Origin: Macrostomum lignano | Taxonomy: Eukaryota | DNA length: 64,000 bases | Assembly (NCBI GenBank): GCA_002269645.1 | Contig: NIVC01002324.1 | Span: forward strand, 43,222 to 107,221 | Direction of reading: 5' to 3' | In this document: piece by piece, positions 601 through 56,052 of the stretch | Layout of the letters: each line of letters starts with the position of its first letter | Position numbering within the stretch: the first letter of the stretch is position 1 | The notes under the pieces: model-generated | Databases searched by the model: none | The model's input: the letters and a program-made list of their open reading frames with translations, nothing else | What the model was told of the DNA's origin: nothing | Translations under genes and position numbers: made by a program

Positions 601-846
601 ATGAAGTGGCAGCTGGCCACTCTTCTGCTCGCCTGCGTCGCCGTGGCCGTCATGGCGTCGCCGTCGGCCGAGGCCGAGGACTCGGACCTGGCCGAGCTCG
701 CCCAGCTGCAGGAGGCCATGGAGAGCGATGAGGTCGAGCACCTGCAGGCTAAAGGCCGCTACAGGCGCTTCAAGCGCAAGCTGAAGCGCGCCTACAAGCG
801 CTATCTGAAGAGGCACGGATACCGGAGGCGCGTGATTTATGGCTGA
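601..846 (+). CDS. Secreted pre-pro cationic peptide 1 (81 aa; K/R-rich amphipathic C-terminal peptide; AMP-like precursor)
   Basis: ORF MKWQLATLLLACVAVAVMA (signal) - SPSAEAEDSDLAELAQLQEAMESDEVEHLQAK (acidic pro) - GRYRRFKRKLKRAYKRYLKRHGYRRRVIYG*. TATAAA at 500-505, GC-rich coding-like codons, N-terminus homologous to the 3282-3581 and 14053-14370 genes. Confidence 0.9.
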   Translation: MKWQLATLLLACVAVAVMASPSAEAEDSDLAELAQLQEAMESDEVEHLQAKGRYRRFKRKLKRAYKRYLKRHGYRRRVIYG

Positions 847-1493
847 TTGTGGCCGCCACTGGACTGTCCGCAACGGAACTGATTGTACTGAGTAATACTA
901 TATGCTCTCCACAGTATGTAGTACTTTGTAGAATTATCGATACAAGTATTGCATTTGCAAAATTATCAATACCGAAAAGAGCATGTTTCACCATCGCATG
1001 AGCTTGTCGTGTCAATGCAGCTGATTTATACAAAAAGAATGGAAATACACGAGCGTACACTTACTTTGCTATTCCTACTCTTATTTTAAGTACAGGTAAC
1101 TCGTACGGGCTACTCTCAGCAGTTCTTGTTTTTATTTATTGAATTTGAAGATGGCTTGCACACCGAGAAGGCGAATTCCGTGTCCTAGATTGGATGATCT
1201 GGCATGCTAAATCAGAGATTGTGCAAAGACTCGACTGTTCTCTTTGATCAAGAGTTCGAATTGATTTTTAGTATGTTTGTATTCAATCGTTCAGAGTCCC
1301 TCTGAAATATGATAAACACTTTTACTATAGCTTTTGCAGCCCATTAGGGCCTACGTGCAATAAATTTAATTTAATGTACCAGTAAGACACGGTTGGTAAA
1401 GTAATGGAGCTTTTGTCTAAAGCTGTGCAATGTTGCTTGAATAAAATTAATATCGTAGGCGTAGGAACGTTTCAAATAGTGGGGGGCCAGGTT

Positions 1494-1545
1494 CAGTGGC
1501 GGATTTAGGGGGGGGGGAGGGCGCACGCCCCCCATCGAGTTGTAT
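1494..1545 (+). mobile_element. Possible end of a hAT-like MITE (CAGTGGCGGATTTAGGGGGG)
   Basis: Resembles a common non-autonomous DNA transposon terminus; the partner end was not found. Confidence 0.3.
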
Positions 1546-1601
1546 TTTTTTGGGAAATGCACATTATCATGTACAGATTCTTTTCAGAATCGGTGTTGTC
1601 A

Positions 1602-2147
1602 GCACTCATTTTAGCGCCGCAGGCACTCATTTTAGCGCCACAAGCATTCATTTTAGCGCCGCAGGCACTCATTTTAGCGCCGCATGCAGTCATTTTAGCG
1701 CCACAAGCACTCATTAGCGCCGCATGCAGTCATTTTAGCGCCGCTAGCGCTGCAGGCAGTCATTTTAGCGCCGCAGGCACTCATTTTAGCGCCGCATGCA
1801 GTCATTTTAGCGCCTCAGGCACTCATTAGCGCCGCATGCAGTCATTTTAGCGCCGCAGGCAGTCATTTTAGCGCTGCAGGCAGTCATTTTAGCGCCGCAG
1901 GCACTCATTAGCGCCGCATGCAGTCATTTTAGCGCTGCAGGCAGTCATTTTAGCGCCGCAGGCACTCATTTTAGCGCCGCATGCAGTCATTTTAGCGCCT
2001 CAGGCACTCATTAGCGCCGCATGCAGTCATTTTAGCGCCGCAGGCAGTCATTTTAGCGCTGCAGGCAGTCATTTTAGCGCCGCAGGCACTCATTTTAGCG
2101 CCGCATGCAGTCATTTTAGCGCCTCAGGCACTCATTAGCGCTGCAGG
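1602..2147. repeat. ~21-bp minisatellite (GCACTCATTTTAGCGCCGCAG and variants)
   Basis: About 25 tandem copies seen directly. Confidence 0.95.
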
Positions 2148-3281
2148 CGATATGTGAAAGAATTCTGCAGTCTCTCAAGAATAACAGCTTTTCTGTTAGG
2201 TTCAAGAACTGTTTATTTGAGTCTGAACCCCCACCCCATTGTGAGCCTGGCACTGGAAGGACCGACTCTTCATTGCCGCTGTCTCAAGGCTAGGTCGCAT
2301 TGAGCATGCAGACTACCTGAGGGGCTGAGTATTCTCTTAACCAGCTCACCCAAATTTGGCTTGAGTTCTTGGGGCTCTGTTTTGTAGGTAAGCGAAAGCT
2401 CCCAGATTTCGGATTTATAGATTCGACGAGGTGGAGCTAGTGGATTTTTGGCTTTCTCTTTAAATATCGAATTCTTCAACGATCATGCATAACTTTTTTT
2501 GATGAAAAAATCGTATTATGACTAGTGGGGTCAAATATTCGAAAAAACATGTTTTTAACGCTTTCACGCTTAACGCTCCGTTTGAATTTAATTGTTCAGT
2601 TCAATCATTTAGGTCTCTCCTTGGCCAATGTACAGTGTATAAGAATGTACATTCACAATAGCTAAGGCGTTTTATGACTCGCAATTTGTGGGGTTGATTG
2701 AGTTTTATCGTTTACCAGTCTGATAGACGATCGATGAAATAGAGGGGGTTATAAAGCTGCTGGCCTGAAATGCGATGTGTTTGCGGACGAAACAAGCCTT
2801 TTTTCACAATCCCCATCTTGCTCTGCTCTGCCCATTTGCCACTGCTCTGATTTTGTTTGTGTTATTTTAGAACACAGAGGGTGGCGCAGTTGCAGATGGG
2901 GGCAGTTGCTAATGGGTTCAATTACTTCAGACTTACTTGGCAAATTTGGAAAATAGTGCGCTAGTCACAATATACTAAATAGTTTCCTAAAAGTGGGAGA
3001 GATGCTGAAGTCTGTTACCCTGCTGCTAAATATTTATTTTAACTAAAAGTTGAAAAAGTTAAAAAAACAATGCTTAATAATTACGAGCTAGCTTGCAAAC
3101 TGCGAACGATGAAATTCCAAGTGTATTTTCTGCCTGGCAGATTCTCAAAGTTCACGATGTTCAACAATCACTTGAGCTGATATTATATAGTAAATTTTTT
3201 TGTTTATTAAGTGTACATTATCAGTAAAGAAAGATTAGTTATATTGTCCAAGGCGATAATTCAGAAGACGGTCCGGTTCGT

Positions 3282-3581
3282 TTAGCCATAGATGTGGTAG
3301 TGCCCGCGGAAGAAGCGCCGCCTGCGGAAGAAGCGCCGCCTGCTGAAGTAGCGCCTGCGGAAGTAGCGCCTGCGGAAGTAGCGACGCCTGCCGAACCGAA
3401 TCCTAAACTTCTCTTCCGGATCCGCGTCCTCGTCGGATTCGGCCAGATCGGGCTCGGCCATGTCGGCCAGGGCGGAGGCCACCTTTTCGAAGTCTTCGTC
3501 GTCTTCTTTGTGCTCAGCCGGGCTGGCGTAGACCGCCAGCGCCACGCACAGGAGGAGACCGAGGGCGAACTGCCACTTCAT
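3282..3581 (-). CDS. Secreted pre-pro cationic peptide 2 (99 aa; RRRYF/RRRFF-repeat C-terminal peptide)
   Basis: Likely start at MKWQFALGLLLCVALAVYA (3581), acidic pro ending PEEK, then FRIRFGRRRYFRRRYFRRRYFSRRRFFRRRRFFRGHYHIYG*. TATAAA on minus strand at 3669-3674; AATAAA on minus strand at 3203-3208. Confidence 0.9.
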   Translation of the reverse strand: MKWQFALGLLLCVALAVYASPAEHKEDDEDFEKVASALADMAEPDLAESDEDADPEEKFRIRFGRRRYFRRRYFRRRYFSRRRFFRRRRFFRGHYHIYG

Positions 3582-3668
3582 GGCTGCTGCTGAATTCAGA
3601 GAGATTCGCTTTGCAAAGTTGATCCCGTCTTGGGTCTTGGGGGCCGTTGTGAGCTCGAGGTGGTCGAC

Positions 3669-3704
3669 TTTATAGACCCGCAATCTGGGGCGGGGACACG
3701 TTTT
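3669..3704 (-). promoter_or_regulatory. TATA box plus AAAACGTG motif of peptide gene 2
   Basis: TATAAA at 3669-3674 and AAAACGTG at 3697-3704 (22 nt spacer); same arrangement in gene 4. Confidence 0.65.
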
Positions 3705-4714
3705 TGCTTACCTGCAAAACAGAAGCCCCAAAAAACGTGCTCTCAAGACTCGATAGGGGGTTGAAATTTGAATGCTTTTGCCTCATGGTCCAAATTGCAT
3801 TCAAAGAAAGAACGAAAGATGCATGCAGTAGCTGCCATTTTAATTTCAGCAACCACATATCTGATATTCATTCTCTCACGGCCCCTTTCTCAACTCAATA
3901 CTACCTAGCCTTGAGGCAGCAGTAATTAAAAGCGGCTCTTCAGTGTCAGACTCACAATAGGTGGCCTCAAGAACAGCATAAGCAAGTCTTGGGCAGTTGA
4001 GCTTGAGAGTTGAAGCTGTTATTGTCTGGAAAACTACCGAACTCTACCTACGAGTCTTGTGAGTTCGCTCACACACTTGCAGACTTGCGTCGCATGGAAG
4101 CTTTTTCGGTCCCAGCATATTTTGGCCCATAAATTTTCTGTCAGGTTGACAGAGATCCCGGGACTTTAAAGCTGATTTGTGTCTATCTTCCAAGGGAATT
4201 TGTTCATCGTCAATTCAGCGAACCCAAAGGTTGCTTGATGGTATCGGCACGGGCTGTTCTGCCAGTCGTCCTGCACACCGCAGCGCTGTTGCTGGGGCTA
4301 TTGATGTCAGTGATGCATTTGCGACAAAACACTGGCATTATTGGCATATTTAGCATAAGCAGTACCCTCAGGAGTTTGCAGCCTAAACTTATGCAGCTTT
4401 GAAAAGTCAGAGATTACTTCATGCTGCCACACCTTCACAGACTAAATATCTTGACTACAAAAGACTGTATCATCATCAGATTCGTATTACATTCAGTGGT
4501 GTAGCAGTTTGAACAACCCACACTCGGCAGTTCAAAATTACCTTCAATGGTTCACCAAAAATTTAGCAATGGTTCACCAGCAGTTCAGCAATGGCTCACC
4601 AACAATTTGGCCACGGTTCACCAACAGTTTAGAAGCGGTTTATCAGAAGTTTAGCAATGGCTCACCAGCTATGGTTTACCAGCACTGTTTCTCACAATCC
4701 CTGAGCAGATGGCC

Positions 4715-4990
4715 ACAAATCTATGGCCATACCGGCTATGGCTACCTCACCAGACACTGCTTCCTCCGAGGCGACCTCGAAAGTGAACTTTGCCGTTTTT
4801 TGCGAGTGTGACAATGAAGATGCTCAGCACTTTGTCTGTCACTGCCCTTTCTTTACCAGAGACCGGCAACGCTACCTCGGGCCAAACCCGTCTATTGACG
4901 AGGTCTGCCAGCCCGACAGAATCTCACGGCTCATCCAGTTCCTCCGGGCGACGAGACGAGCCACTTTCTTCCCTACGGAAGATCAAAGCT
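4715..4990 (+). mobile_element. 3'-end remnant of a non-LTR retrotransposon (I/Nimb/Loa-like C-terminal CCHC region)
   Basis: TGYGYLTRHCFLRGDLESELCRF, then after a frameshift CECDNEDAQHFVCHCPFFTRDRQ...LIQFLRATRR. Matches the TGH..L..HL...G....C..C...E...H....CP zinc-knuckle typical of these LINE ORF2 C-termini. Confidence 0.7.
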
Positions 4991-5112
4991 GCAGGAAGGA
5001 CCGGCGGACCACCCTGACCGGCCCCACGCCTCTGCCTGTCTGCGGGCCTTCGGGGGCTGGCGGAATGGGCGACCCTCGCCTCCCCGCTGTGTCTACGGAC
5101 CACCATGCAGCT

Positions 5113-5413
5113 AAGTAAAGTAAGTCAAAGGGCCAGATGTACAAACGACAGCTCAGCCGCAGCTATTGCGCGGCGCATCTGAAGGCTGCGTACGGCTGTT
5201 CAGTCCAAGGACTGGGATTAATTACTAATACTGGCACCCATTTTACAGCTGGGTGAACTGAAGCAATGGAGAGTTAAGTGTCTTGCTCAAGGACACTAAC
5301 AAGGAAGTTTTCCTAGTGGTTTTTGGACACTAATTGTTCCAGCTAGATCAGGAATCGAACCCCTGACCTTCAAGTCGTGATTCCGACGCTCTAAGTACTA
5401 GGTTACAACTCCC
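5113..5413 (-). mobile_element. tRNA-derived CORE-type SINE
   Basis: Minus strand: tRNA-like head with B box GGTTCGATTCC (5351-5361), central GTGTCCTTGAGCAAGACACTTAAC...CAGCTGTAAAATGGG resembling the MIR/CORE domain, and a short CTTA/CTTTA tail near 5113. Confidence 0.8.
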
Positions 5414-6012
5414 TTGCTATTGAGATACACGTCAAAAGATTCATACTCAACCCAACAGATGACATTTTAGCATTGTTATGCATATAGTTACGTCTGTACT
5501 GGTAATATACGTTGTTTTTTATTTCAAAAAGCATTGTTAGTCGTTTCAGTCGGTCCTAAAGTAGTTGATTTATAATACAACTTGTATTCGTCTTATAATC
5601 TCCTGAGTTATTATAGGGATACCCCTGCGTTAAATTAAGTGGGTTGGTTATGCACGAAAACGAAACTTTACTTGGCTGTAGTTTTGTTGAATTTATTTTA
5701 GTTGGTATGAGTAGGTGGTTTCTATTATCAGTTAATGAATTCAAACAATGCATAAACACTCTTTTATAGATCTGATCAATATTCACCAGCCATCTGAGAG
5801 TCTGCATGGACGAAGCAAATAATTAAACCTGGCCGAAAAAGGAAGACCTTGAGAGATGCTGAGCACTGGGGGGTCTTTCTCGAAAGCAACTTACGATCGA
5901 CCATAGACGTAAGTTGGGTAAGCTACACTTACGGGTTGCTCGAAGGGCTCGCAAGTTAGCTATGCGTAAGATTGATCGCAACTTTACGAGTTCGTAACTT
6001 TGTGCAAAAGAC

Positions 6013-6383
6013 TCATGGATGAATGAATAGAATGGATTGCTATTCTGGCTCTGGCTATTTTCGTTTTTGACTCTTTTGCATCCGGTTCCCCCCGTGCCTT
6101 TTCATTGGTTGATGATTGCCATAGACAATTTTCGGCCTTCGCCCCTTTCTTTCCTTTTTATTGTAGACGAATCGACTCTCGAATCGTGCTTGTAGGTCTT
6201 CCCCCTTTATTTCAAAACACGAGCGAAAGCGCTTGTGCATCGAAAGAAAGGGGCGAAGGCCGAAAATTGTCTATGGCAATCATCAACCAATGAAAAGGCA
6301 CGGGGGGGAACCGGATGCAAAAGAGTCAAAAACGAAAATAGCCAGAGCCAGAATAGCAATCCATTCTATTCATTCATCCATGA
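6013..6383. repeat. Long near-perfect inverted repeat (~141-bp arms, 88-nt loop)
   Basis: 6013-6153 is the reverse complement of 6242-6383, with one indel in a C/G run. Confidence 0.9.
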
Positions 6384-6564
6384 AAAGACTGTTTCTCGAA
6401 ACGTTCGTATGTCTATGGTCTTTCGTAAGGTTGATCTTAACCCTACGACTGCTCGGTATCAGTCGTAAGACGCACTAATCGCATAGTACGTGAAGCTTTA
6501 GTCAAGCCAAGTCAAGTTAAACTTTATCGAAGGTGGGTCTTTCTCGAAAGCAACTTACGATAGA

Positions 6565-6607
6565 CCAAGGAGTTCTATAATTAGCAACTAATTATAGAAC
6601 TCCTTGG
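6565..6607. repeat. Perfect 20-bp hairpin with 3-nt loop
   Basis: CCAAGGAGTTCTATAATTAG-CAA-CTAATTATAGAACTCCTTGG. Confidence 0.9.
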
Positions 6608-8139
6608 ATAGACTAAGTAAAGATATTTGCAGATTTATGACCATAGACATGCAACTTTTCGTTTCAGATACGACTTACGAACAGCGTAAGCCACGCAAAG
6701 TCTAAGTGAGTTTTGAGAAAGCGTCTTACGAGCAAACTTACTGTGACGTTGTCAGTTTAAGGTGGTCCCGAAAAGGGCCGTTGGACTGCTGGTTTTCCAT
6801 AGTCATTCAACCCTTCAGTTTCACCGCTTCAACTAAACTTTTCCATTCGTTTATTGCGACGTTTACTTGTAGTAGTGCCCAACGATTTTGTGGCAATTTA
6901 TAATTCATTGTATATTTTGCTATCCTCTCTCGCCACCGTATAAAATTGGCACGATCGATAATTTTAAGTTCTCTCGCCAGCCAATGAAATCACTCGTGTT
7001 CGCGCTACCCCCTCTGCGCTCTTTTATTAAACCCCCCCGCCTGGCGGCGGGCACTCCACGCGCCCCTTGCTCTCTCTCGCTCCTCTCTCTCCGCTTGCTC
7101 CTTGTTTCCTTCCCTGCGGCCTCTTAGCTGTCTTATCTGTTTGTCTGGCTGCCTCGAGCCTCCTTATTTCTCACCACGGCCCTTCTGTCTGGGCCAGCCT
7201 GCTCACACACTTACTTGACTGTTTCACGCCACGACCGACGCCAACTCACCACTACGTTTCACTGCATTCACTGTGATCATAGCCACTGCTCACGTCACGT
7301 CGCCATTGTGTCATTCGCCTGCCACTTGACTTCATATCCAAATTATATTCAACCCATTGCTGCAGCCGCCAGTGCCCAGAAAGCTATAGTCTGTTTATTG
7401 CCAGTAACAACCAAACTTAATACTGATATTAACAATAAAGACAACTACGGCAGTTCCTGCCTTTATCGCCAAGTGCTCCGCTACAAAATCCGCTTTACAA
7501 GAATTGACTTCAACTTATTTTGGGACTAAAACGGCCCTTTTAAGGGTCACCGCATAGCTGGCCGCTACGCCAATAACGTGACACTTACGCTACACGCAAA
7601 TTTCTTTCTTACGATCTAACTTACCATAGAACTTACGTGAGTTTCGAGAAACACCCCCTGTTTGATAATATTGAAAAATATTACTTTCGAACTTTCAAAC
7701 TGGATGAACCGTTTTGCGTGAACACAGTTGTCTATGGTATGATCTAAATTTAGCTCCCATTAAGAAAGCATTTGTGGACGAAAGGTTTTGCAGTTTGGAC
7801 GAATTCAATCGCAAAAAAGTATATTAGGCGCTCTGTATTGTGAGTTTGAAGTGGTCGGGCCGAGGGCCAGGGTCACAAGCTGCTTGGCATTGAAACTGTA
7901 ACTTGTCTGGAAAATTACTGGAATTTTTTATTCTTTTTAGACGCACGCAGGTCTCTCTTTCTATTGTTTTCACTGCATTTTTTTCTAAGCCTCATACCAA
8001 GAAAACGACCCTGCCTGTCCGTCTTAAACTCAAGTTTAGATTGCATTGGCATGCTCTTCTATACATAGTTTCATTGTGCTAAAGGAGGGATCGGAAAAAA
8101 TTGTTACCTTAAGAGCCAAACAACCTAGCGCATGCCTTG

Positions 8140-8370: not shown

Positions 8371-9924
8371 CATGTGGCTCTCGGGCTGAAGTTTGCCGAC
8401 GCCTGCGCTACGTTTCAGCCCTCTGCATCCTATCTAACGAGTGTCCCAAAAGAGGGTAATGCTGTCTGCGTTAACTGCGAGCGAGCAGTTTTGCGTATAC
8501 CGCTGTAAATTGACAGTTTTACACTGAATATGTGCAATTGTTTTACTCCAACGATTTTGTGCCGAAAAAAATATCCAGTTTGTGCCAATCGTTGCCTTAG
8601 AGCAGTCATAGGTAACTTTTGAATGCTACAAAAAGTACTTTATTTTTAAGAAAACGAAAAGACGAACAGTGAAACTGAAAATGAACATAAAACAGCAATT
8701 CCGAGGCTACATGCACATGTCACGTACATGCATGATACTTGTTAAAAACTCCGCGACATGTCACTAAGCTATACGTGCCTCAGATGATGCTCATAGATTC
8801 CAATGCACTCTCGTCCTGTCGAAACCAACCAAAAGCTCCCACAGCGGCTGAGTCATAGATCTTATATTCCCTAGATAGGCCATTTTGTATTGTGGCAATA
8901 GGAAATGCGACCGTTGTCACTGGTGCGAAAAAGCTGACATGGGTTGCTTAAATTTTTAGTTCAGTAGCTTAGGGACACAGACACTATTTTTTGAGAAGTT
9001 GATAGAACTTCTTATTAAGTAAGAGTAGATATGTATAAGATATTCTATCGGTTTGAGGTCGGTATGAGATTAAATCCCGAGAGTTGCAACTGGCATATAT
9101 TTTCTCCAAAACTGGATGAAAATGTCATTCTGCACCATTTTCCAAAGTTTGATACCGCCTCTCAGTATTGGATCGACGCATTGAGATCAGAGGCTATAAC
9201 CTCGGACGTCGTCAGGCAACACAAACTGCAGCTATGAAGCCTACAATTTGAAAGACGCCTACCCCCAATTTTGACGTCAATTTGCGGTTGCGTTGACGTA
9301 GCAAAAATTACCTAACTGACTAACGATTTCGTTGGTAAATTTGTTTTTGCCACAGAAGCGTGGGGCACCGTTTTGCTTGCGGCAACGCCCCATTTAGTTG
9401 CTGCACGCTTTTTTTGTAAAAAAACAACGAAATCGTTTGGCAATGCAACTCAAGCCTCACTGCAGAATTTTAGTGATGAAGCGTTTCTATTTACTGTTCC
9501 AATGTGGCTCAGAGCGGTTCGTGGAAAAACACTGGTTTTTTCCTTTTCTGCCATGCAGGCACAAGAGATGGTTATAGAGCGGAGAGGGGTTGGGTGACTG
9601 GCTTGTTATATTGTTTGATATGAATATTTCGTGGCATTGGACTGATGGTCCGAACTTGAGATAGACGAACTTGCTTTCAAGTTATTAAATTTTACAGTTT
9701 TTTTACTTACTACGATCTTGTGTTTTACCCACTTTATAAGTCATAGTCATAATCAATCAAAGCGACCGATAAATATCCAGTATGTTTTATGAGCTACCAA
9801 AGTATGCTCGCATGCTAGAACTATGATTCTTTCAATCTAAAAATCATTATATACTAAATCTCTATATTTACTAAAGTCTTAATGTTTTTTTAATGCAAAA
9901 TAGGCATGTAAATCAATCTATGAA

Positions 9925-10290
9925 ACAACCATGGAATCTATCGAATCAATCTATGGAACAATCATGGAATCTATCGAATCAATCTATGGAACAATCATGG
10001 AATCTATCGAATCAATCTATAGAACAATCATGGAATCTATTGAATCAATCTATAGAACAATCATGGAATCTATCGAATCAATCTATGGAACAATCATGGA
10101 ATCTATCGAATCAATCTATAGAACAATCATGGAATCTATTGAATCAATCTATGGAACAATCATGGAATCTATCGAATCAATCTATGGAACAATCATGGAA
10201 TCTATCGAATCAATCTATGGAACAATCATGGAATCTATCGAATCAATCTATGGAACAATCATGGAATCTATTGAATCAATCTATGGAAAA
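9925..10290. repeat. 33-bp minisatellite (ATGGAATCTATCGAATCAATCTATGGAACAATC), ~11 copies
   Basis: Tandem copies visible; gives the repetitive MESIESIYGTI ORF. Confidence 0.95.
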
Positions 10291-10452: not shown

Positions 10453-10632
10453 CTAGAACTGCGAGCGCCGGCGGAAGTAGCGATGCTTGCGGAACCGGAA
10501 CCGAATCCGGAACTTCTCTTGCAGATCCGTGTTCTCGTCGGACTCGGCCAACTCGGACTCGGCCAGGTCGGGCTCGGCCGCGTCCGGCTCGGCCAGGTCG
10601 GCCAGGGTGTTGGACAACTTTTCGAGGTCTTC
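10453..10632 (-). pseudogene. Pseudogene A of the cationic peptide family (gene-2-like; signal peptide and promoter deleted, C-terminus truncated)
   Basis: EDLEKLSNTLADLAEPDAAEPDLAESELAESDENTDLQEKFRIRFRFRKHRYFRRRSQF* aligns to the gene 2 pro and mature regions. At 10633 it joins sequence homologous to gene 2 upstream 3721-3750 (agccccaaaa.acgtgc.ctc), implying a deletion of ~220 nt. Confidence 0.8.
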
Positions 10633-10699
10633 AGACAGCCCCAAAAGACGTGCCCTCGACCTAGTTTCGGGAATTTCGGGTTAATGAAAAACCGGTTTC

Positions 10700-12269: not shown

Positions 12270-12440
12270 TCAAACTTCCAGGGCGAACTGCCACTTCATA
12301 GCTGCTGCTGCTGCGGTTGCTTTTGAAATCAAAGACGACAGCAAAATCGGTTCGCAGATTTTGCTCAACTTGGGGCCTGCTGGGCGCTCTCGGCCGGTCA
12401 TGGTGACGGTCACGTTTTCGTTGTATTGCTGTCATCTGGA
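12270..12440 (-). pseudogene. Pseudogene B of the peptide family (promoter/5'UTR plus first 7 codons only)
   Basis: ATGAAGTGGCAGTTCGCCCT (MKWQFAL) at 12280-12299, then EV* (stop 12270-12272). Upstream sequence aligns with gene 4 14370-14525 including AAAACGTG (12411-12418), but the TATA segment is missing. Confidence 0.8.
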
Positions 12441-12767: not shown

Positions 12768-12855
<88 letters not shown>

Positions 12856-12868
12856 ATAGTAGTAGTAA

Positions 12869-12924
<56 letters not shown>

Positions 12925-12925
12925 A

Positions 12926-12969
<44 letters not shown>

Positions 12970-12970
12970 A

Positions 12971-13007
<37 letters not shown>

Positions 13008-13008
13008 C

Positions 13009-13075
<67 letters not shown>

Positions 13076-13086
13076 AGTAGTAGTAG
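12768..13086. repeat. (AGT)n microsatellite
   Basis: About 106 units visible. Confidence 0.98.
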
Positions 13087-14052
13087 CGGAATTGTGGAAG
13101 GGTAAAAGGTTAATTAAGCGCTCTGTGTAGAAACATAAAATTCAGACTGATGAAAAAATCACGGTGCTTAGATTTATTTTAAGATTCCTTCTCATTTAAT
13201 TTACTGCCGTTACTAGTGCGAGTATGGAATGAAAAAGTTGGCAATAAAGTTTGTTAATCTGAGACAGACTCGTGACTCATAAATAGGTGCTAAGCAAATA
13301 TTCGTAATAATAGTAGTAGAAGTTGTAGAAAGATGAGCTGCTTATTAGAATATTATACGACTCAAGCACTGCTTGGACCCACCCAACTCGCGTTGGAGGC
13401 CTCGGCTGCCAATTGTGCTCAATTTGCGCGTGAGAATGTAAAGCAGTCTCTCAAACTCATGCAATGAATCTGGGTAGCAGTTTTAACAATGAATCTCTGC
13501 ACTTGGCAGACTGGTCCGGCTCCACTTAGACGTCGAACTCAGACGTCGAACTCAGACGGACGAGCGCAGACGAAAAAAACTAGCAGAGATGTATTCCTCC
13601 GCTTACTCAGTTTAAATATTGCTCGTATGACAATAGCTTCATTTTCTTCGTACCTAGATCTAGGTATTTTCCATTACAGTCGCATTTGTTCGTCTTAAAG
13701 AATCGAGTATTTTTTTCACCACAATGTGGCGTGAAATTTAGGCATAGATGGCAACCATTTTGATGGTTCAAAGCGAGCTAAAGCTTTGCCTAGTCGGGTA
13801 TTGTTTATTTCGCGCTTCTTTCTCATCTTTCGAAGATATAATTCATTCAATCAGGTCCTTTTCTAACAAGCAAGTAAGATTTGAAACGAGGAAAACACTA
13901 AACTAAAGTATTCATCAAGCAAGTATCGAGAGAAGAGAAAAAATTTGTATGTTCTACTGAAGTTCTTATTACAGAGCGAATTTCCGAACTACTGGGTGTA
14001 TTAAAAGTGGTTTTATTTATGTCCAAAATGTTTTTCTCGCACGGGTTTTCGA

Positions 14053-14370
14053 TTAACCGTGGTAAGCGACGATGTGGACGTGGTGGCGACGGTGATAGCG
14101 CCTGCGGTAATAGCGCCGGTAAAAGCGCCTGCGGTAATAGCGCCTGCGGCTGTGGTACACAAAATAGTGGCGACGCCTACGACGACGGAAGAACAACTTC
14201 TCCTCGGGAGCCAGGTCGCTGTCCGATTCGGCCAACTCCGGCTCAGCCATGTCGGCCAGGGCATCGTTGGAAGCCTCGTCCAGGTTGTCGTCGTCGACTT
14301 GCTCAGCCGGGCTGGCGTAGACCGCCAGCGCCACGCACAGGAGGAGACCAAGGGCGAACTGCCACTTCAT
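14053..14370 (-). CDS. Secreted pre-pro cationic peptide 4 (105 aa; Arg/Tyr/His-rich C-terminal peptide)
   Basis: MKWQFALGLLLCVALAVYA signal (same protein sequence as gene 2), acidic pro ending PEEK, then LFFRRRRRRHYFVYHSRRRYYRRRFYRRYYRRRYHRRHHVHIVAYHG*. TATAAA on minus strand at 14464-14469; AATAAA on minus strand at 14012-14017. Confidence 0.9.
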   Translation of the reverse strand: MKWQFALGLLLCVALAVYASPAEQVDDDNLDEASNDALADMAEPELAESDSDLAPEEKLFFRRRRRRHYFVYHSRRRYYRRRFYRRYYRRRYHRRHHVHIVAYHG

Positions 14371-14463
14371 TGCTGCTGCTGCTTTAGAAATCAAAGACAA
14401 CAAACTCGGTTCGCAAAGATGCTACCCGACTTGGGAGCTCCTGGGCGCTTCACACAAGCCTTA

Positions 14464-14535
14464 TTTATAGACCCACTTTGATGGGGACGGTCACGTTTTC
14501 GCTTTATTATTGCCAGCTGGACCCCTTAACACGTG
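14464..14535 (-). promoter_or_regulatory. TATA box, AAAACGTG motif and CACGTG E-box of peptide gene 4
   Basis: TATAAA at 14464-14469, AAAACGTG at 14492-14499, CACGTG at 14530-14535. Confidence 0.65.
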
Positions 14536-16059: not shown

Positions 16060-16740
16060 TTAAAGTACGAATAAAAACATGACAACAATTGGGTTAACTT
16101 CTTTGAGAATTTTTTTTGAAAATAAAAGTCTAAACCACAAAATACACGCGCTAACGCGCACTCGTGGTCTAGGCATTGTTACACTTGCAAGCCGTACACT
16201 CTCTCCATTGGCTACCTTCAAAACCATAGGCTCGATCTGCATGTAGCTTGTGCCATTGCCAGTGGGTTCGGTCCGTGGATGAATAAAACCATGGATTTCT
16301 CGAGGCCCCCGTTCGCACCGATTGGCTACTGTAGATTCCATTGCTGTAAATTCGGTGCAAGTTGCAGTTCTGATTCATACTTAAAAGACAAAACGACTGA
16401 CTACAAGTAGTAAAAGAAGCTGAACTTTAAACCATTGAGATGGCGTGTCATTATTTGCATATCCAGTCAAGGATGAACAAAGGCTGACTATTTGTCTTGA
16501 CATCGTTAAAACAGATCGAGTATTCACACCGACATGAATCAAGTACCAGTGTGAGCTCCATTTCAAGAACGAAGACTTTCCTACTTTGGCACAGGGAGGC
16601 CATGCAAGCTCCTGGTAAGAGTAGAAAAAGATTGAGACGTACGAATGTCTCGATCATCCAGTCCTGCAACGCTTTGCTGCTGAAGGCCCAGAATTGTACT
16701 GCATTCCTTGTCTTAATTGTACTTTTTCAATAATTTTCTA
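16060..16740 (-). mobile_element. Possible decayed LTR-retrotransposon gag/protease-like remnant
   Basis: Weak motif resemblance only: VAGLDDRDIRT (gag-like) and LKVANGESV (retropepsin flap-like) in broken frames. Confidence 0.25.
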
Positions 16741-17939: not shown

Positions 17940-18245
17940 AGATGCTGAGACGCGGAACCAGCCTCAGGTGGTTTAAGAGCAAAAGAATCGCCAATACGAA
18001 GTCTGCTTGCAACAAAGGGCGGCAGTTTCAGGTCTGGGAGACGAGTTCAAGAGCTGATTCAGCACGCAGAATGAGTCCAAGAGGACAGCGGTTCGTCAAG
18101 CTGCAAACTGAGCTGCAAACTGCTGCTGAGGGGCTGATCAGAGCGACACCTAGGGATATGTGGTCGGCGTGGATTGAGGACTGAGGAGTTGCCGATGTGA
18201 TATGACAAGTGCATTCGACAGAATGAAGATTCTTCTGAAGAATTT
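17940..18245 (+). mobile_element. Tc1/mariner transposase C-terminal remnant
   Basis: RGQRF...ELQTAAEGLIRATPRDMWSAWIED, then a shifted YDKCIRQNEDSSEE, matching the mariner C-terminal RW.KCI..NG.Y.E pattern. A mariner-like end (GTGCGTCCAAAAAGTTC) lies at ~16764. Confidence 0.55.
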
Positions 18246-18982
18246 CACGATTGGTGATCTGTTTTTTGTTTGAACTGTTTGCTCGGTAACTTTTACATTT
18301 TATTGAGTTTAAAATCGTATTGCTAATTTCGTAGGTTCGTCAGTAAAAGATCGATTGCTTTTGCTCTGTCAACCCGATTAAGCTGAAACTTAAGCACTGA
18401 ATTCATTACATATAGGTCCATGTTTGTGTAAATTTTTATAAAAATCAATTGAACAGATGCATAGATAGGAGGGGTGTCTAAGTTTCATATGTCTGTCTGT
18501 CTGTCTGTCAGTCCTGCATGTTCCTGCATCTGTTTCTCCTGGAGAAGAAATCTTTCAATGCATTTATATTACTTTATTTTGAGCATCAGTAATATTGATG
18601 CTACGGCACGTTTTCTTTTTTTTATTCTTTGCGATATAACAGGGCTTTGCACATATTAGAATGATTGAGTTTGAAAGTTCATTTATTAGGAAATTAAGAA
18701 AACCTCTGGCTTTAATAGTATTAACTCTTGTCTCGAAATTACATTAGCCTCTCAGATACGCATTTGAAATACGCGCGAAAAATATGAAAACTAGTGTAAT
18801 GGCTGAAACAATTTTATAGGACTTAGAAATCTAATTCCTTGCAAAAATTTCGCTTCGATCGGAACGACTGAGTCCATTTCACCAGCTCGTATTCGTCTGA
18901 AATGTGGAGGTGTTTGAGTACGGTGTTGTTATCTCGAAAGCCGCTTTAATTGCATTCACTGTAAAATTGGTGGCACTTCTTC

Positions 18983-19640
18983 AGTCTAACAGGTGACATA
19001 ATTCTAGTCTAACAGGTGACAATCCTAGTCTAACAGGTGACATAATTCTAGTCTAACAGGTGACATAATTCTAGTCTAACAGGTGACAATCCTAGTCTAA
19101 CAGGTGACATAATTCTAGTCTAACAGGTGACATAATTCTAGTCTAACAGGTGACATAATCCTAGTCTAACAGGTGACATAATCCTAGTCTAACAGGTGAC
19201 ATAATCCTAGTCTAACAGGTGACACAATTCTAGTCTAACAGGTGACACAATCCTAGTCTAACAGGTGACACAATTCTAGTCTAACAGGTGACACAATCCT
19301 AGTCTAACAGGTGACACAATCCTAGTCTAACAGGTGACACAATTCTAGTCTAACAGGTGACACAATCCTAGTCTAACAGGTGACACAATTCTAGTCTAAC
19401 AGGTGACATAATTCTAGTCTAACAGGTGACATAATCCTAGTCTAACAGGTGACAATCCTAGTCTAACAGGTGACATAATTCTAGTCTAACATGTGACATA
19501 ATCCTAGTCTAACATGTGACATAATCCTAGTCTAACAGGTGACATAATCCCAGTCTAACAGGTGGCATAACCCCAGTCTAACATGTGACATAATCCTAGT
19601 CTAACAGGTGACATAATCCTATTCTAACAGGTGGCATAAC
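18983..19640. repeat. 21-23-bp minisatellite (CTAGTCTAACAGGTGACATAAT[T/C])
   Basis: About 29 tandem copies. Confidence 0.95.
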
Positions 19641-20200
19641 CCACTAGCACTCCTGGCTACCAGGACCACATTGTAATGAACTGATGACTCACACAGGACT
19701 CTAGTGCGGACCACGTGACTGATGCACTCAACAATGCCGCCCAGGTCGCCCAGCCTGAACCATCTGGCCTGGGTTCGCAGCCATGCGGGCATCTGCCGGT
19801 GCTGCTGTCTCTGCTGCTCCGCTTCAAATGCCAGCCACACCAGCTGACAGGAGGGCCGATTCTCCAGGAGCTCGGCCAGCACCGACTGCTCCCCGGCTGA
19901 AACCGGCCGATCTGTCTGCAGGAACAGGCAGTGACAGGACTCATCAGCTGTCAGCTGATCGATTGACTTGGCTCGAACTCGATACCAGCTCTTGGTCACA
20001 CCGTAGTCGCATTTCAACTTTTTCACCACCCGATGCAGCACCGAGGAGGCTGAGGCTGCAGCGGATTCCGCCCCGACTCCGGCTGTCAAAAGAAGAACTT
20101 CAACGGGATCGCTGGCGCGAATATTTGAACTGCTGTACAGCTGACCCATGAATAACTGCTGTGTGCGGTGTTTTGAGTGTTGCAGGCTTGCACAGGCCAA
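19619..20200 (-). CDS. Hypothetical protein or exon (up to 193 aa), alternating alpha/beta pattern
   Basis: GC-rich non-repetitive ORF with coding-like codon usage. Its 3' end runs into a minisatellite, probably an intron (candidate donor GTGGGT near 19643). No family recognised with certainty. Confidence 0.55.
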   Translation of the reverse strand: MACASLQHSKHRTQQLFMGQLYSSSNIRASDPVEVLLLTAGVGAESAAASASSVLHRVVKKLKCDYGVTKSWYRVRAKSIDQLTADESCHCLFLQTDRPVSAGEQSVLAELLENRPSCQLVWLAFEAEQQRQQHRQMPAWLRTQARWFRLGDLGGIVECISHVVRTRVLCESSVHYNVVLVARSASGLCHLLE

Positions 20201-20754
20201 TTCTATTGTTAGTTATAGTCACCCGAGTGGCAAAATTGGCTCTCTATTTATACTTGTACTCGTGTCTGTATTTTCACCTTCTTACTCATCTCCACCTCAA
20301 CACATTGAAACCTCTGCTCCAAGCTATTGTGCGTTGTACGTTGAAGATATTTCGTTAAATAAGCATTAAAAGCAATTTCTTACCTCCTTGAGTTTGGGAC
20401 TTAAAAAAATATATATTTAAAAAGTTTTAATGAATAAAACCAAGGACTCATCAGGCGGATAAGTAGTGCGGATGAATTTTTGTATGCAATGAATTTCGCA
20501 GTCCACGTCACTCACGCCACACCAGCATCAGTGATGCCTGCAGTAGCGAGACTGACGAATCTCTGCACCCTGCTGACTCGTGTCCAAGATCCAGAATCAC
20601 ACAGTCCTTGATCGAAGTCTTGATTAGAAACCCTTATTAACTTGAGCAGTTCCCTAGCTCTCGGTCAGATAGGGCGCGGCAGTGCATTCCCCCCCCCCTG
20701 GGCCCATGTTTTTGGGCCAACCACCTTCCGCAAACCGTCTGCATCAACCCCCAT

Positions 20755-21103
20755 CGCCTAGCTGCCTTCAACCGCCCCCATTCTTTCTGCCCCATTTATC
20801 ACACCCAAGCCTGATTGGTTGCCCATGTCTGCTCCACCCCTCCGCCTAGCTGCCTCCAACCGCCCCATTCTTTCTGCCCTATTTATCACACCCAAGCCTG
20901 ATTGGCTGCCCATGTCTGCTCCACCCCTCCGCCTAGCTGCCTCCAACCGCCCCCATTCTTTCTGCCCCATTTATCACACCCAAGCCTGATTGGCTGCCCA
21001 TGTCTGCTCCACCCCTCCGCCTAGCTGCCTCCAACCGCCCATGCTTTCTGCCCCATTTATCACACCCAAGCCTGATTGGCTGCCCATGTCTGCTCCACCC
21101 CTA
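20755..21103. repeat. ~87-bp tandem repeat, ~4 copies
   Basis: Directly visible. Confidence 0.9.
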
Positions 21104-22104
21104 TTTTTCGGGTTTCCTAATCCTACCCATTGATAAGTATCACAGCCAATCATTACCTAAGCCCTGACCTAAAGACTAAATTATACATACGCTCGTAATT
21201 ATAAATGAAACAAAAAATGAATTTTGAAAGCGATACACCGATAACTTAAGAATAACTTCTAGGATGAAGTACACTGTAAATTGTATCAGCCATTGACGCT
21301 TGAAGTTATATGCGCGCTGTCCCTCGTTCTACTTAGATCAAGTCAAGTAAAAGTAATATAATTAGGTTCGCGTTCGATCACGGAAGGACGATCTGGCCGA
21401 AGCTACAAAATAAATTACCGAAACTGCCACATTGCTACATTTAAAAATCCTGTAATCGCAAGTTTTTTTGCATACCTAATTGGACAGATAAAAAAATCTC
21501 TAAACTCCTTGAAGATATCCTTGAAGCTCGATTGAATCCGCTTTGTAATGACAGTGCTACTATGTGCGGTACATCCGTTTTCTGATCACACCTGTTGTCC
21601 TGATACTATTTAAAAATATTAGCCCTGCATTCGTAATAAGAGCTACAATTTAATTTAATTCTAGTTCAGGCGTCTTGAATGGTACTATATATAGAAGCTG
21701 TGAGAACGTATTAAAAGTTTCAACGCACTAAATCAAACTTTTTTGCAGTTCTGTCTGCCCCCTGACAAGACCGACACTTTACTGGTGTTTTTCGCAAATG
21801 CTAAAATTAGCTCGTAGCAATAGCAAGTAGAAATTAAAGAAATTGGATGTGCATGCTTTGCATGACAGAGAGTTGCTGGAATGAAATTAAAACAAATAAT
21901 TCTGACCGGAATGCCGTTGAATATCCTGACGCCATTTGAATCCTTGAATGCTTGAAAACTTGAACTAGCGAATGACTAGGCGCTTTACCTTTAAATTTGA
22001 AGTTTTAATCACATAATCCATTTTGCGGTAAATGAGAATAGGGAGCAGTGATCCCGCTTGGAAATTTTATAGAGATCCGTATAGATCCGAGCATATCATT
22101 CAGA

Positions 22105-22370
22105 TTCCTGACGTACAGATCCATGATTTACAGATCCGTGACGTACAGATCCATGATTTACAGATCCGTGACGTACAGATCCATGATTTACAGATCCGTG
22201 ACGTACAGATCCATGATTTACAGATCCGTGACGTACAGATCCGTGACGCGCAGATTTCTGACGTACAGATCCATGATTTACAGATCCGTGACGTACAGAT
22301 CCGTGATTTACAGATCCGGGACGTACAGATCCGTGATTTACAGATATTTGGTGTACAGATCTATGACATC
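22105..22370. repeat. 30-bp (2x15) minisatellite GACGTACAGATCCATGATTTACAGATCCGT
   Basis: Directly visible. Confidence 0.9.
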
Positions 22371-22624
22371 AAGTAAATCTAGTTACCAACACTCAAAACA
22401 CCCATAGCTGGGTTATAACCACTGGACGTCACAAAATCGCCATTTTTAATTGACGCTTGTTCCAGGAAATCACTCCTAGGATTGCTGTCGCCAAAATAAG
22501 CGCTCTTAATTTCAATTCGGCTCGATATTGTTGTGCAGCTAGGTCTCACGAATTCCAAACGAAGTCAAGTACATGTTTTACTGAGGTGCACTCGTAAGTT
22601 TGTCAAGGACAACAACAACAACAA

Positions 22625-22890
22625 CAGGGCACACCGCCGGGGAAACGGAGTAAAGTTCTCAAGAGGGCGGTGTCAGATATCAGTTTTTTCAGCGCGAGCT
22701 CTCTGAGAAGGTGGCAACAGCCGGTGGCGTCCCAGCTGAGGCAGTATAGTCGAAACCTTTTTGACCGACAACGCCGAAAGGTGGACGCAGCACACTCGGC
22801 CCTGCAGTGAGCAGTTTTCAGCATCAGCTACCCGGAGCCGTCTCCAACGCAGCCCTCTACAAGCGCGCAGGACTGCGACCACCTAGCGGG
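22625..22890 (+). mobile_element. Degenerate RTE-clade LINE fragment
   Basis: Broken frames give VDAAHSAL...AVFSISYPE.VSNAALYKRAGLRP, the region just upstream of the RRL.LAGH motif in RTE ORF2. Homologous to 25780-26200. Confidence 0.65.
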
Positions 22891-23658
22891 TCCACCGCCT
22901 TAGAATACAGTTGTGTTCACTACACAGATTTGCTTTTTGTTCATAGTGCGTTAAAAGGGATTTCAGCATGGACATATTCGATACAGAATTCGGCCGAGGA
23001 AAGACACTACAGGGACAGGAACAGCCAAAATTTTACAGGAACTTCGATTGCTTTCTTGCCGGTCTCTGGGAGAATTTCATGCAATACTAGACTTGATAAA
23101 CTTGTGTGTGCAACTCGGATAAAACGCTACATTTTGCAGCGATTTGCACGCATTTAGACTACTTTTAAGTAGTCCACCGAGTTCACAGTGAGCCTTAACA
23201 TGCAGTTAATCGCATCTTGGCTTAGAACGAACTCAACTTCAAACGACGAGTTTTTTGGAAATTTGTAGATAAGCAGGGAGCTCTTTAATATTGAACTGTA
23301 AACTTACAGTTTCGATACGCAGTCTATTTATTTCAGATGTTAAAAGACAGAAATATTTGAAATATTTGTTAGTACTTGTAAACTGGTAAAGATCGCCTTG
23401 AGCGTCTTGCTTAACTTGAAATCTGAGATCCGTGAGTAAAAATGGATTGAGCAATTGGAGCTGGTTGAAAGAAAGAGAATTACACGTGTTAAGCGGTCAA
23501 TATAGTTGTCTAGTTAGAAAGATAGACAGTTCAATGGAAAATTTGTGGTGGGTAAAGCTGATAACAAAATCAATATGCTAAGTAATTAGTCAGAGTTCAT
23601 CAAGATGTTAAGTAGAGTTTCTTTCTGTGTTGATTTCTTCGGGCCGTTAATCCAATTT

Positions 23659-24105
23659 TTAGCCATAGTACCTGCGCCTGTAGTACCTGCGCCTGTAGTA
23701 CCTACGCCTGTAGTACCTCCGCCTGTAGTAGCGCCTGGACCTGTAGTATCTGCGCCTGTAGTAGCGCCTGTAGCGCCTGTAGTGGCGCCTATAGTAGCGC
23801 CTGGCCCTGTAGTATCTGCGCCTGTAGTAGCGCCTGTAGTAGCGCCTGAGAGCTCGCCTGTAGCGCCTGTAGTAGCGCCGTCTCCGGAATCGGTACTTCT
23901 GCTCGACAGGGCTCACCTCACTTGATTCAGACTCGAGAGCGTCGCTGCTGGGCGACTCCAGCTCCATCAGGGCGTTTTCGAGGGCTTCGGGCTCGTCGGA
24001 CTCGGCCTCGACATCCGCAGGCTTCGCCGGCTGCTCCTCGGCAGCCACGCAGAAGACCGCCAGGCCGAGCACCAGAAGGCTCAGGCACAGCAGCTGCAGC
24101 TTCAT
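23659..24105 (-). CDS. Secreted pre-pro cationic peptide 5 (148 aa; 78-aa RRRYY-repeat C-terminal peptide)
   Basis: MKLQLLCLSLLVLGLAVFCVAA signal, acidic pro ending VEQK, then a 78-aa region with 43 R and 28 Y (manual count) ending RRRYYG*. TATAAG on minus strand at 24197-24202; AAAACGTG at 24223-24230. Confidence 0.9.
   Translation of the reverse strand: MKLQLLCLSLLVLGLAVFCVAAEEQPAKPADVEAESDEPEALENALMELESPSSDALESESSEVSPVEQKYRFRRRRYYRRYRRALRRYYRRYYRRRYYRARRYYRRHYRRYRRYYRRRYYRSRRYYRRRYYRRRYYRRRYYRRRYYG

Positions 24106-54974: not shown

Positions 54975-56052
<1,078 letters not shown>

Follow-up and report, generated by a model that had tools for sequence, protein, structure and literature searches.

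Contig NIVC01002324.1 of assembly Mlig_3_7 (GCA_002269645.1) of Macrostomum lignano, a free-living marine flatworm, carries a cluster of short genes that raises the question of what kind of peptide family they encode and how its products might work. In the 64,000-nucleotide (nt) stretch of this contig that we analyzed, hereafter the window, positions 601-24105 hold four intact single-exon open reading frames (ORFs; g1, g2, g3, and g4) and two relics (A and B), and the cluster spans approximately 23.7 kb from the g1 promoter to the g4 promoter. A first-pass annotation made from the letters alone had proposed these four genes and two relics, and their coordinates were borne out when we checked them against an ORF list and a six-frame motif scan of the window. 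Searches by tblastn with all family members recovered no further copies in the 24-64 kb portion of the window or in the 9.4 kb adjoining its left edge. The window genes belong to a larger M. lignano family, and we consider it very probable that they encode secreted precursors, cleaved after a conserved Lys and C-terminally amidated, with products that act by generic binding to polyanionic surfaces.

Precursor architecture and the wider family

Each intact gene encodes an MK-x-Q signal peptide, an acidic pro-piece, a Lys at the junction, a mature part without acidic residues, and a Gly immediately before the stop codon (Table 1). Each signal peptide opens with an MK n-region and has 13-15 residues of hydrophobic core; V-x-A precedes the predicted cleavage site, with small residues at -3 and -1, and the maximum Kyte-Doolittle mean over 10 residues is 2.9-3.2 across the four genes. 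Net charges of the pro-pieces are -9 in g1 and -14 in each of g2, g3, and g4. Those of the mature parts are +15, +19, +19, and +43 from g1 to g4, exactly the values counted by hand in the first-pass annotation, and the count of Asp and Glu is zero in all four. The final Gly proposed at the same time is likewise present in every gene, preceded by -VIY in g1, -HIY in g2, -AYH in g3, and -RYY in g4. The single Lys described earlier holds at the junction, but g2 and g4 carry additional Lys residues inside the pro-piece.

All four genes are called on the NCBI record of NIVC01002324.1, and because their gene ranges equal the lengths of their coding sequences (CDS), the latter are single-exon; the description of the genes as intronless thus applies to the CDS, and the untranslated regions (UTRs) could still contain introns. 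The GenBank annotation of Mlig_3_7 was derived solely from RNA-seq-based transcript assemblies (PMC5730564), and the presence of g1-g4 in this transcript-derived gene set therefore implies transcript support. Family members in GenBank are all labelled 'hypothetical protein', and related proteins carry BOX15_Mlig locus tags. Antisense ORFs that run over the repeats (23605-23925, 14059-14481, and 3294-3593, all on the + strand) were rejected as by-products of GC-rich repeats, the annotated, signal-bearing frame being the MKWQ frame.

To place these genes in a broader context, we ran profiles of the pre-pro region alone on protein collections of 5.8 and 1.84 billion proteins, and these matched only proteins named M. 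lignano together with one unattributed contig from the SRA. Through the pre-pro profile alone we identified at least 20 distinct M. lignano paralogs, among which g1-g4 form one branch. Searches of Pfam, NCBIfam, and PDB sequences gave no meaningful match for the family proteins, and a borderline Lock_Gag1-like match on protein P0044 was discarded because it was due to an internal duplication of 17 residues. Literature searches by peptide strings yielded no paper that prints family sequences, only unrelated coincidental string matches, and a search for Macrostomum together with antimicrobial peptides returned nothing relevant. By these searches the family is homologous to no named family. The earlier proposal of an undescribed paralogous family is thereby upheld, and the check suggested alongside it, tblastn or profile searches with the pre-pro region, returned a large M. 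lignano family and no characterized one.

Approximately 20 further distinct members share the same signal peptide (MKWQLALGLLLCAALAVA), an acidic pro-piece, and a KK/KKK site followed by short peptides of alternating hydrophobic and basic residues. The mature peptides of most paralogs comprise 6-14 residues after KK/KKK, with FVRVRVRL-G, IFRVRVHI-G, WLRVRARVRI-G, FIHIHF-G, and GFHVHFH-G as examples, and of the 26 distinct members at least 20 carry the terminal Gly. The Lys at the junction hardly varies; in the window genes it falls, when aligned, on the final K of the paralogs' KK/KKK sites, and this match is the best available argument for placing the putative cleavage there. Other members include g5, an inverted gene pair on NIVC01001363 with the mature peptide WRRRRRFRWRKAIRVAGKVAKAVL; g6, found on three contigs with the mature peptide WFSRWFRITYRRRGGERRYLRSYFRL-G; the two-Cys member P0037 (WRIKSACKIFRRLLHLARKCYAKK-G); and P0055, with a Pro/Arg-rich peptide. 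One Pro/Arg-rich member lies on a 929-bp contig of SRA run SRR31628392. A 20-kb stretch of NIVC01000619 holds five family genes in mixed orientation, each with GGAAACACGTGCC…GCATAAAT approximately 85 nt 5' of the ATG. Paralogs in which hydrophobic residues alternate with His (FIHIHF-G and GFHVHFH-G; P0052-P0054; locus L012, 13065-13253) would be uncharged at seawater pH; peptides of this hydrophobic/His-alternating kind resemble designed self-assembling or metal-binding beta-strand peptides.

The window genes are not equally close to the rest of the family. The signal type MK(W/L/Y)Q-x-A/L-LGLLLC, detectable by the pre-pro-only profile, is clear in g1, g2, and g3 (BLASTP E-values of 1e-9 to 6e-27). 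The pre-pro regions of g2 and g3 are 76% identical (E = 6e-27), and g1 resembles these two chiefly in the signal peptide (E of approximately 1e-9). The outlier is g4: its pairwise BLASTP E-values are 0.002-0.4, and when hhalign compared it with a family profile from which it had been left out, the probability was 87% (E = 3.8e-6); we include it in the family because of this hhalign score, its shared promoter, its position in the cluster, and its shared repeat codons. The first-pass annotation had singled out genes 1, 2, and 4 as clearly similar, and this grouping did not survive the BLASTP comparison: the close set is instead g2 and g3 together with g6 from another locus.

The intact copies also share a promoter module, with a TATA box 93-99 nt 5' of the ATG and an AAACGTG-type box 13-23 nt further upstream. 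The combination of an AAA(A/C)ACGTG box and TATA is exact in g2, g3, and g4, and g1 has the variant AAAGCGTG. When the window was scanned for AAACGTG-N15-40-YATAAR, four matches were found against 0.24 expected, three of which are the promoters of g2, g3, and g4. The module recurs at other M. lignano loci, namely at g5, at five genes on locus L012, and on locus L011, and its family-wide form is GGAAA(A/C)ACGTG followed by a TATA box 10-25 nt on (window promoters and loci L003, L011, and L012), lying 85-100 nt 5' of the ATG of a single-exon CDS. The ACGTG core suggests a factor of the basic helix-loop-helix or basic leucine-zipper type, and the presence of a common AAACGTG-plus-TATA promoter across the family argues for co-regulation.

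Conservation gradient, repeat growth, and copy variation

Nucleotide identity is 95-98% in the signal-coding region, 72-74% in the pro-piece, and 43-60% in the mature region, with flanks at 52-66% and shuffled sequences at approximately 50%. Over the first 60 nt, which encode the signal peptide, g2, g3, and g6 show no nonsynonymous and 1-2 synonymous differences, and synonymous divergence (dS) in the pro-piece is 0.4-0.7. A conserved pre-pro region with a hypervariable mature peptide had been proposed from inspection, and the measured gradient from signal through pro-piece to mature part confirms it. A hyper-conserved signal, an intermediate spacer, and a free-running mature peptide make up the pattern of frog-skin peptide and conotoxin genes; neuropeptide families show the opposite pattern, in which the mature peptide is the conserved part. 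The resemblance to frog preprodermaseptin-type and conotoxin genes includes near-invariant signal DNA, synonymous sites among it, an intermediate acidic spacer, a near-random mature peptide, frequent C-terminal Gly amidation, and organization in tandem clusters. The flatworm genes differ from them in having a K or KK/KKK site rather than KR, in being single-exon, and in being non-homologous, and in g2-g4 the mature part is made of minisatellite repeats in place of an amphipathic helix or a Cys framework.

The mature regions of g2, g3, and g4 consist of tandem repeats with a 15-nt period that encode RRRYF or RRRYY (Table 1). The codon string AGGCGCTAYTWC has seven matches in the window against 0.01 expected, all of them inside these three mature regions, and therefore the repeats of g2, g3, and g4 share an origin. 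Judged from these repeats, the window cluster is a branch of the family in which a 15-nt minisatellite (RRRYY/RRRYF) has expanded in frame and so extended the mature part. Radical divergence of the mature peptides, as described previously, is indeed seen, but it is largely a matter of such expansion. The intergenic spacers are rich in micro- and minisatellites (12768-13086, 1602-2148, 9911-10288, 18983-19639, and 22101-22366), with (AGT)107 and arrays of 21-, 33-, 23-, and 15/30-nt periods. This repeat-prone neighborhood may have favored in-frame 15-nt expansions within the genes.

Part of the cluster is present a second time on the duplicate contig NIVC01000866.1, where g4, g3, and both relics occur in the same order with 94-99% identity. 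The relics lie there (locus L002) at 13740-13910 (relic A) and 12108 (relic B), and since both are shared, they predate that duplication. Relic A is nearest to g2 (54% over 59 amino acids), and relic B has lost its TATA box and has an ORF broken after codon 7. An identical copy of g4 is found on NIVC01000112.1, and the copy on NIVC01000866.1 carries one R>M change; across the duplicate contigs there are 0-1 CDS changes, too few to inform on selection, and the flanks differ by 1-6%. Length variants of g3 exist on other contigs as P0001 (96 amino acids) and P0033 (75 amino acids, with a truncated end). P0001 lacks nine residues that are found in its own genomic ORF (L002, 10001-10318), corresponding to a 27-nt gap inside the RRRYY repeat. 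A g5 copy, P0002 (L003, 10001-14554), and P0036 on another contig are annotated with an N-terminal extension of 47-49 residues, which in P0002 is spliced on from approximately 4 kb upstream, with the inverted twin gene in between. Both the gap in P0001 and the extensions of P0002 and P0036 are probably transcript-assembly artefacts.

Candidate mechanism and alternative roles

We infer secretion, the cleavage site, amidation, the target, and the role of these peptides from sequence features, which together suggest the following sequence of events. A Sec signal peptide, cleaved after V-x-A, would bring the precursor into the secretory pathway, and the acidic pro-piece of 31-48 residues (-9 to -14) would partly neutralize the polycation and keep it harmless and soluble in transport; by charge count this neutralization is partial, with a net charge of +5/+6 in g1-g3. 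The pro-piece of g1 is predicted to form a helix adjoining the polycation. The single-sequence AlphaFold2 (AF2) model of g1 has a predicted local distance difference test (pLDDT) score of approximately 90 over residues 31-70, with helices at 21-41 and 44-51 in the pro-piece and at 54-71 in the mature part, whose helical hydrophobic moment is 0.80, and it fits an arrangement in which an acidic helix packs against a cationic, amphipathic one. A convertase-type endoprotease would then cut after the junction Lys, which in most paralogs is the last residue of KK/KKK, and the terminal Gly would be turned into a C-terminal amide. The resulting peptides, 29 to 77 residues long, very basic, and rich in aromatic residues, would bind polyanionic surfaces by generic electrostatic and cation-pi/aromatic contacts and not through a specific receptor.

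The likeliest use of such products would be host defense, with microbial envelopes as the target, and we hold the full account, molecular mechanism and host defense combined, only tentatively, with confidence somewhat short of an even balance. We favor host defense because of the evolutionary signature, the paralogs that resemble antimicrobial peptides, the compact TATA-driven genes, and the clustered organization with fast turnover. A lineage-specific host-defense arsenal was also the inference of the first-pass annotation, and the mucus/rhabdite, adhesive, and seminal-fluid secretions that it named as alternatives are still candidate roles. The peptide of g5, the two-Cys P0037, the Pro/Arg-rich P0055, and the alternating types such as FVRVRVRL-G all have, by sequence, the classic looks of antimicrobial peptides.

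Hydra arminins consist of a signal peptide, an anionic pro-region, and a cationic C-terminal peptide, and they form a lineage-restricted multigene family with variable active parts. The flatworm family is like them in precursor layout, and the g5 peptide appears to share the Arg/Trp-plus-amphipathic-tail style of arminins as these are generally described; the arminins differ in belonging to another phylum, and the window peptides are repeat polycations that are far more basic. No homology to the pre-pro regions of Hydra arminin, frog preprodermaseptin, or cathelicidin was found in Pfam or with profiles in the two large protein collections. By analogy, then, Hydra arminins and frog preprodermaseptin-type genes would be the closest systems in mode of action, and the closest in composition are protamines and Mfp-3-type adhesive peptides.

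A profile of the full-length precursors gave a different set of look-alikes, matching Arg/Tyr-rich bacterial proteins with a twin-arginine translocation (Tat) signal and otherwise two M. lignano proteins; we rejected this match because it was lost in the pre-pro-only searches, the Arg/Tyr tract being the sole part that carried it. These uncharacterized bacterial proteins run strikingly parallel in layout, with a signal for export, then a linker rich in acidic residues and Pro, and an (RRRYY)n-like tract at the C-terminus, 90-140 amino acids in total, an example being GCM10008171_31830 of Methylopila jiangsuensis, which bears the UniRef label 'Protamine-2 (modular protein)'. They differ in having a twin-arginine instead of a Sec signal, in lacking a terminal Gly, and in being prokaryotic stand-alone genes. 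No conserved neighbors and no NCBIfam or Pfam family were found for the look-alikes at loci L013 (5001-5309) and L014 (5001-5345). The bacterial-type look-alikes P0003-P0030 derive from bacterial genome assemblies together with metagenome and SRA contigs. On this comparison, the shared Arg/Tyr-rich layout is convergent and not homologous.

Several points weigh against host defense by the proposed route. In an exact-sequence look-up, the protein of g3 was found in NCBI, UniRef, and nr (P0032), whereas those of g1, g2, and g4 were not found in the protein collection, and we therefore rate the annotation and transcription of the latter three as probable. Nine family gene identifiers are absent from the searchable papers and from the supplements of PMC5816591, PMC5977470, and PMC5730564. 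Processing raises its own difficulties: the RR/RRR runs are potential convertase sites, so that the peptides may not survive a regulated secretory pathway, and cleavage at a single basic residue that follows an acidic context (EEK, EQK) is a putative step. Basic residues make up 46-55% of the mature peptides of g2-g4 and aromatic ones (Y, F, W, H) 38-43%; these peptides are minisatellites at the DNA level and resemble protamine-like or adhesive/coacervating polycations more closely than typical amphipathic antimicrobial peptides. For g2, AF2 gives no confident fold (pLDDT 63; predicted template modelling score 0.25), and the repeat peptides are therefore probably disordered polyelectrolytes. 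Lastly, the pro-piece of g4 does not neutralize its mature part, leaving a net charge of +29.

These same properties make a structural or condensing polycation the foremost alternative, in which the long (RRRYY)n and (RRRYF)n tracts would be secretory materials and not antibiotics. Its variants include an adhesive, cement, or mucus that coacervates in response to salt or pH, a tyrosinase-crosslinkable egg-shell precursor, and a counter-ion that condenses polyanions, such as sulphated glycosaminoglycans, in rhabdites or gland granules; in each case the acidic pro-piece would hold off premature condensation. The Arg/Tyr-Phe repeats of g2-g4 fit a coacervating or polyanion-condensing polycation about as well as they fit an antimicrobial role. 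Arg and Tyr form the strongest cation-pi sticker pair, and cationic aromatic peptides of the mussel Mfp type coacervate at seawater ionic strength. The composition of g4 (55% Arg and 36% Tyr in the mature part), the aromatic content of g2 and g3, and the missing confident fold all accord with a material, as do growth by minisatellite expansion, common among structural low-complexity proteins, and the copy-length variants P0001 and P0033. Sulphated glycosaminoglycans occur in planarian rhabdites (PMC5450325), and flatworm adhesion proceeds via cationic Gly/Arg/Lys-rich proteins on anionic surfaces, with tyrosinase present in the tail of another flatworm (PMC9229212).

The two compositional relatives clarify where this likeness stops. 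Mfp-3-type adhesive peptides are, like the products of g2-g4, small, secreted, Arg/Tyr-rich, and disordered, with a chemistry that lends itself to cation-pi cohesion and to coacervation in seawater, but the resemblance is one of composition only: they have neither an acidic pro-piece nor amidation, the flatworm paralogs are short and Tyr-free, and profile and Pfam searches detected no homology to Mfp-3. Protamines likewise match the window peptides in Arg content (40-55%), interspersed Tyr, and low complexity, and strong binding to polyanions is expected of both, yet they are nuclear proteins that lack a signal peptide, whereas the window precursors carry a canonical signal peptide followed by an acidic pro-piece; no window protein has a Pfam protamine match. 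The remainder of the family consists of peptides of 6-25 residues, many without Tyr, that do not look like structural proteins, and bioactive peptides are typically marked by C-terminal amidation and by a hyper-conserved signal joined to a hypervariable mature part. The known adhesive proteins of M. lignano are 5,407 and 14,794 amino acids long, and dihydroxyphenylalanine was not detected in the footprints of the related system (PMC9229212). On balance, we consider a material role fairly unlikely.

A more specific version would join both ideas, and we regard it as unlikely, if still worth stating in full. In it, a family of short amidated cationic peptides like antimicrobial ones would have given rise, via in-frame expansion of the 15-nt minisatellite, to (RRRYY)n polycations of up to +43 that serve as a material and not as an antibiotic. 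Attached to the pro-piece, these would be soluble in granules; once cleaved and set free in seawater, they would either coacervate or condense polyanions (sulphated glycosaminoglycans, glycocalyx, nucleic acids, or silica). Possible sites would be mucus and rhabdites, egg cement or shell, and adhesive release in the duo-gland system, and the FIHIHF-amide and GFHVHFH-amide peptides would be pH-switched, self-assembling relatives. In the charge-based model of flatworm adhesion, the releasing agent is unknown (PMC9229212).

Signaling appears improbable. Under this reading the genes would encode precursors of neuropeptides, hormones, pheromones, or seminal-fluid peptides whose amidated products act on receptors, and invertebrate neuropeptide precursors have the same order of signal, spacer, basic site, peptide, Gly, and stop. 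With 8-12 residues behind a KK/KKK site and a putative amide, the short paralogs match neuropeptides in size, one of them would end in -VRFamide, and small secreted proteins are encoded by many transcripts of the M. lignano prostate (PMC5977470). The mature peptide is nonetheless the least conserved region here, and no receptor ligand familiar to us resembles repeats of 30-78 residues that carry charges of +15 to +43. Flatworm neuropeptides of the FLP, NPF, and RYamide types share a conserved C-terminal motif for receptor binding, such as -RFamide, -GRPRFamide, or -RYamide, and no such common motif is seen in these peptides: their C-termini vary within the window (-IY, -IY, -YH, and -YY amide) and elsewhere in the family (-RL, -HI, -RI, -RF, and -HF). 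Family identifiers are also absent from the prostate-screen supplements searched, and the supplement of that screen contains no primers or sequences (PMC5977470).

An offensive or digestive secretion seems comparably improbable. Peptides from pharyngeal or gut glands would here lyse or immobilize prey such as diatoms and protists, or deter predators, and both the precursor grammar and the conservation gradient fit toxin families as well as they fit families of antimicrobial peptides. Nucleic-acid probes for in situ hybridization recurrently stick non-specifically in the pharyngeal glands and head secretion cells of M. lignano (PMC12148028), and one could speculate that polycationic granule contents explain this background and that these gland cells are a candidate site of expression. 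Probe background has many possible causes, however, and the mechanism overlaps with that of host defense.

Finally, we think it very improbable that the Arg/Tyr tracts are runaway minisatellites in redundant, decaying paralogs whose functional product is lost, or else that the Arg runs act solely as convertase sites, so that just di- or tripeptides (YY, YF) would be set free, since, despite two of six cluster copies already being relics, the existence of length variants and the truncated P0033, and the formal dibasic sites offered by RR/RRR, every repeat-length change is in frame, all intact copies keep the Gly-stop, promoter box, TATA, and signal peptide, g3 and g4 are identical or one residue apart between duplicate contigs whose flanks diverge by 1-6%, and the genes sit in a transcript-derived annotation.

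Window coordinates, neighboring features, and implications

Table 1 Coordinates of the family genes, their parts, promoters, and relics in the window
Feature	Position	Strand	Detail
g1 promoter	480..505	+	variant box AAAGCGTG 480-487; TATAAA 500-505, ~96 nt 5' of ATG
g1 CDS	601..846	+	81 aa; called gene
g1 signal	601-657	+	MKWQLATLLLACVAVAVMA
g1 acidic pro-piece	658-753	+	ends ...HLQAK
g1 mature peptide	754-843	+	GRYRRFKRKLKRAYKRYLKRHGYRRRVIY plus Gly; charge +15; stop 844-846
g2 promoter	3669..3704	-	AAAACGTG box 3704-3697; TATAAA 3674-3669, 93 nt 5' of ATG
g2 CDS	3282..3581	-	99 aa; called gene
g2 signal	3581-3525	-	
g2 pro-piece	3524-3408	-	ends ...DPEEK
g2 mature peptide	3407-3285	-	FRIRFGRRRYFRRRYFRRRYFSRRRFFRRRRFFRGHYHIY plus Gly; charge +19
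g2 tandem repeat	3297-3395	-	15/18-nt, encoding RRRYF units
g2 candidate poly(A) signal	3203..3208	-	AATAAA, ~75 nt past stop
Relic A	10453..10644	-	pro-piece and start of basic peptide (…LQEKFRIRFRFRKHRYFRRRSQF*); without signal peptide or start context
Relic B	12273..12417	-	AAACGTG box 12417-12411; conserved 5' UTR; MKWQFALEV* 12299-12273
g3 promoter	14464..14498	-	AAACGTG box 14498-14492; TATAAA 14469-14464, 99 nt 5' of ATG
g3 CDS	14053..14370	-	105 aa; called gene
g3 signal	14370-14314	-	
g3 pro-piece	14313-14197	-	ends ...APEEK
g3 mature peptide	14196-14056	-	LFFRRRRRRHYFVYHSRRRYYRRRFYRRYYRRRYHRRHHVHIVAYH plus Gly; charge +19
g3 repeat	14086-14149	-	15-nt
g3 candidate poly(A) signal	14012..14017	-	AATAAA, ~36 nt past stop
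g4 promoter	24197..24229	-	AAACGTG box 24229-24223; TATAAG 24202-24197, 97 nt 5' of ATG
g4 CDS	23659..24105	-	148 aa; called gene
g4 signal	24105-24040	-	
g4 pro-piece	24039-23896	-	ends ...PVEQK
g4 mature peptide	23895-23662	-	78 aa incl. terminal Gly; 43 Arg, 28 Tyr, mostly (RRRYY)n; charge +43
g4 repeats	23666-23879	-	15-nt and related in-frame repeats

Beyond the cluster, the window contains an intact single-exon gene for a rhodopsin-family G-protein-coupled receptor of 338 amino acids (26837-27853, - strand; Pfam 7tm_1, E = 3e-33), 2.7 kb from g4; an exact-sequence look-up did not turn up any called gene for this product. An exon encoding a C-terminal Maf1 domain lies at 32509-32985 on the - strand (Pfam Maf1, E = 2e-24), and C2H2 zinc-finger exons broken up by a Pro/Ser-rich repeat lie at 54262-56055 on the + strand. 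There are also two satellites, one of 1.8 kb with a 30-nt unit (38528-40373) and one of 9.6 kb with the 15-nt unit AGTCAGGGGAATTAG in 640 copies at 92% match (40855-50459); both have a GC skew of up to 0.69 and very long spurious ORFs on both strands.

A comparable family of antimicrobial or secretory peptides appears not to have been described from Macrostomum before. What is new is an unrelated, lineage-restricted family that has the classical precursor grammar of defense peptides together with a branch of Arg/Tyr polycations built from minisatellites. M. lignano offers transgenesis, RNA interference, in situ hybridization, and single-nucleus atlases, and the promoter module of approximately 130 bp and the signal-coding region common to several genes make the family testable by reporter lines and multi-gene knock-down; the module itself could act as a cell-type-specific mini-promoter in transgenesis. 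Were the repeat peptides to prove a secretory material, they would provide a natural minimal model of cation-pi coacervation and a case in which a gene for a bioactive peptide turned structural through minisatellite growth. If host defense is the true role, the family would represent a large, fast-evolving arsenal of innate immunity in a flatworm model, with unusually short natural amidated peptides of the beta-strand type.

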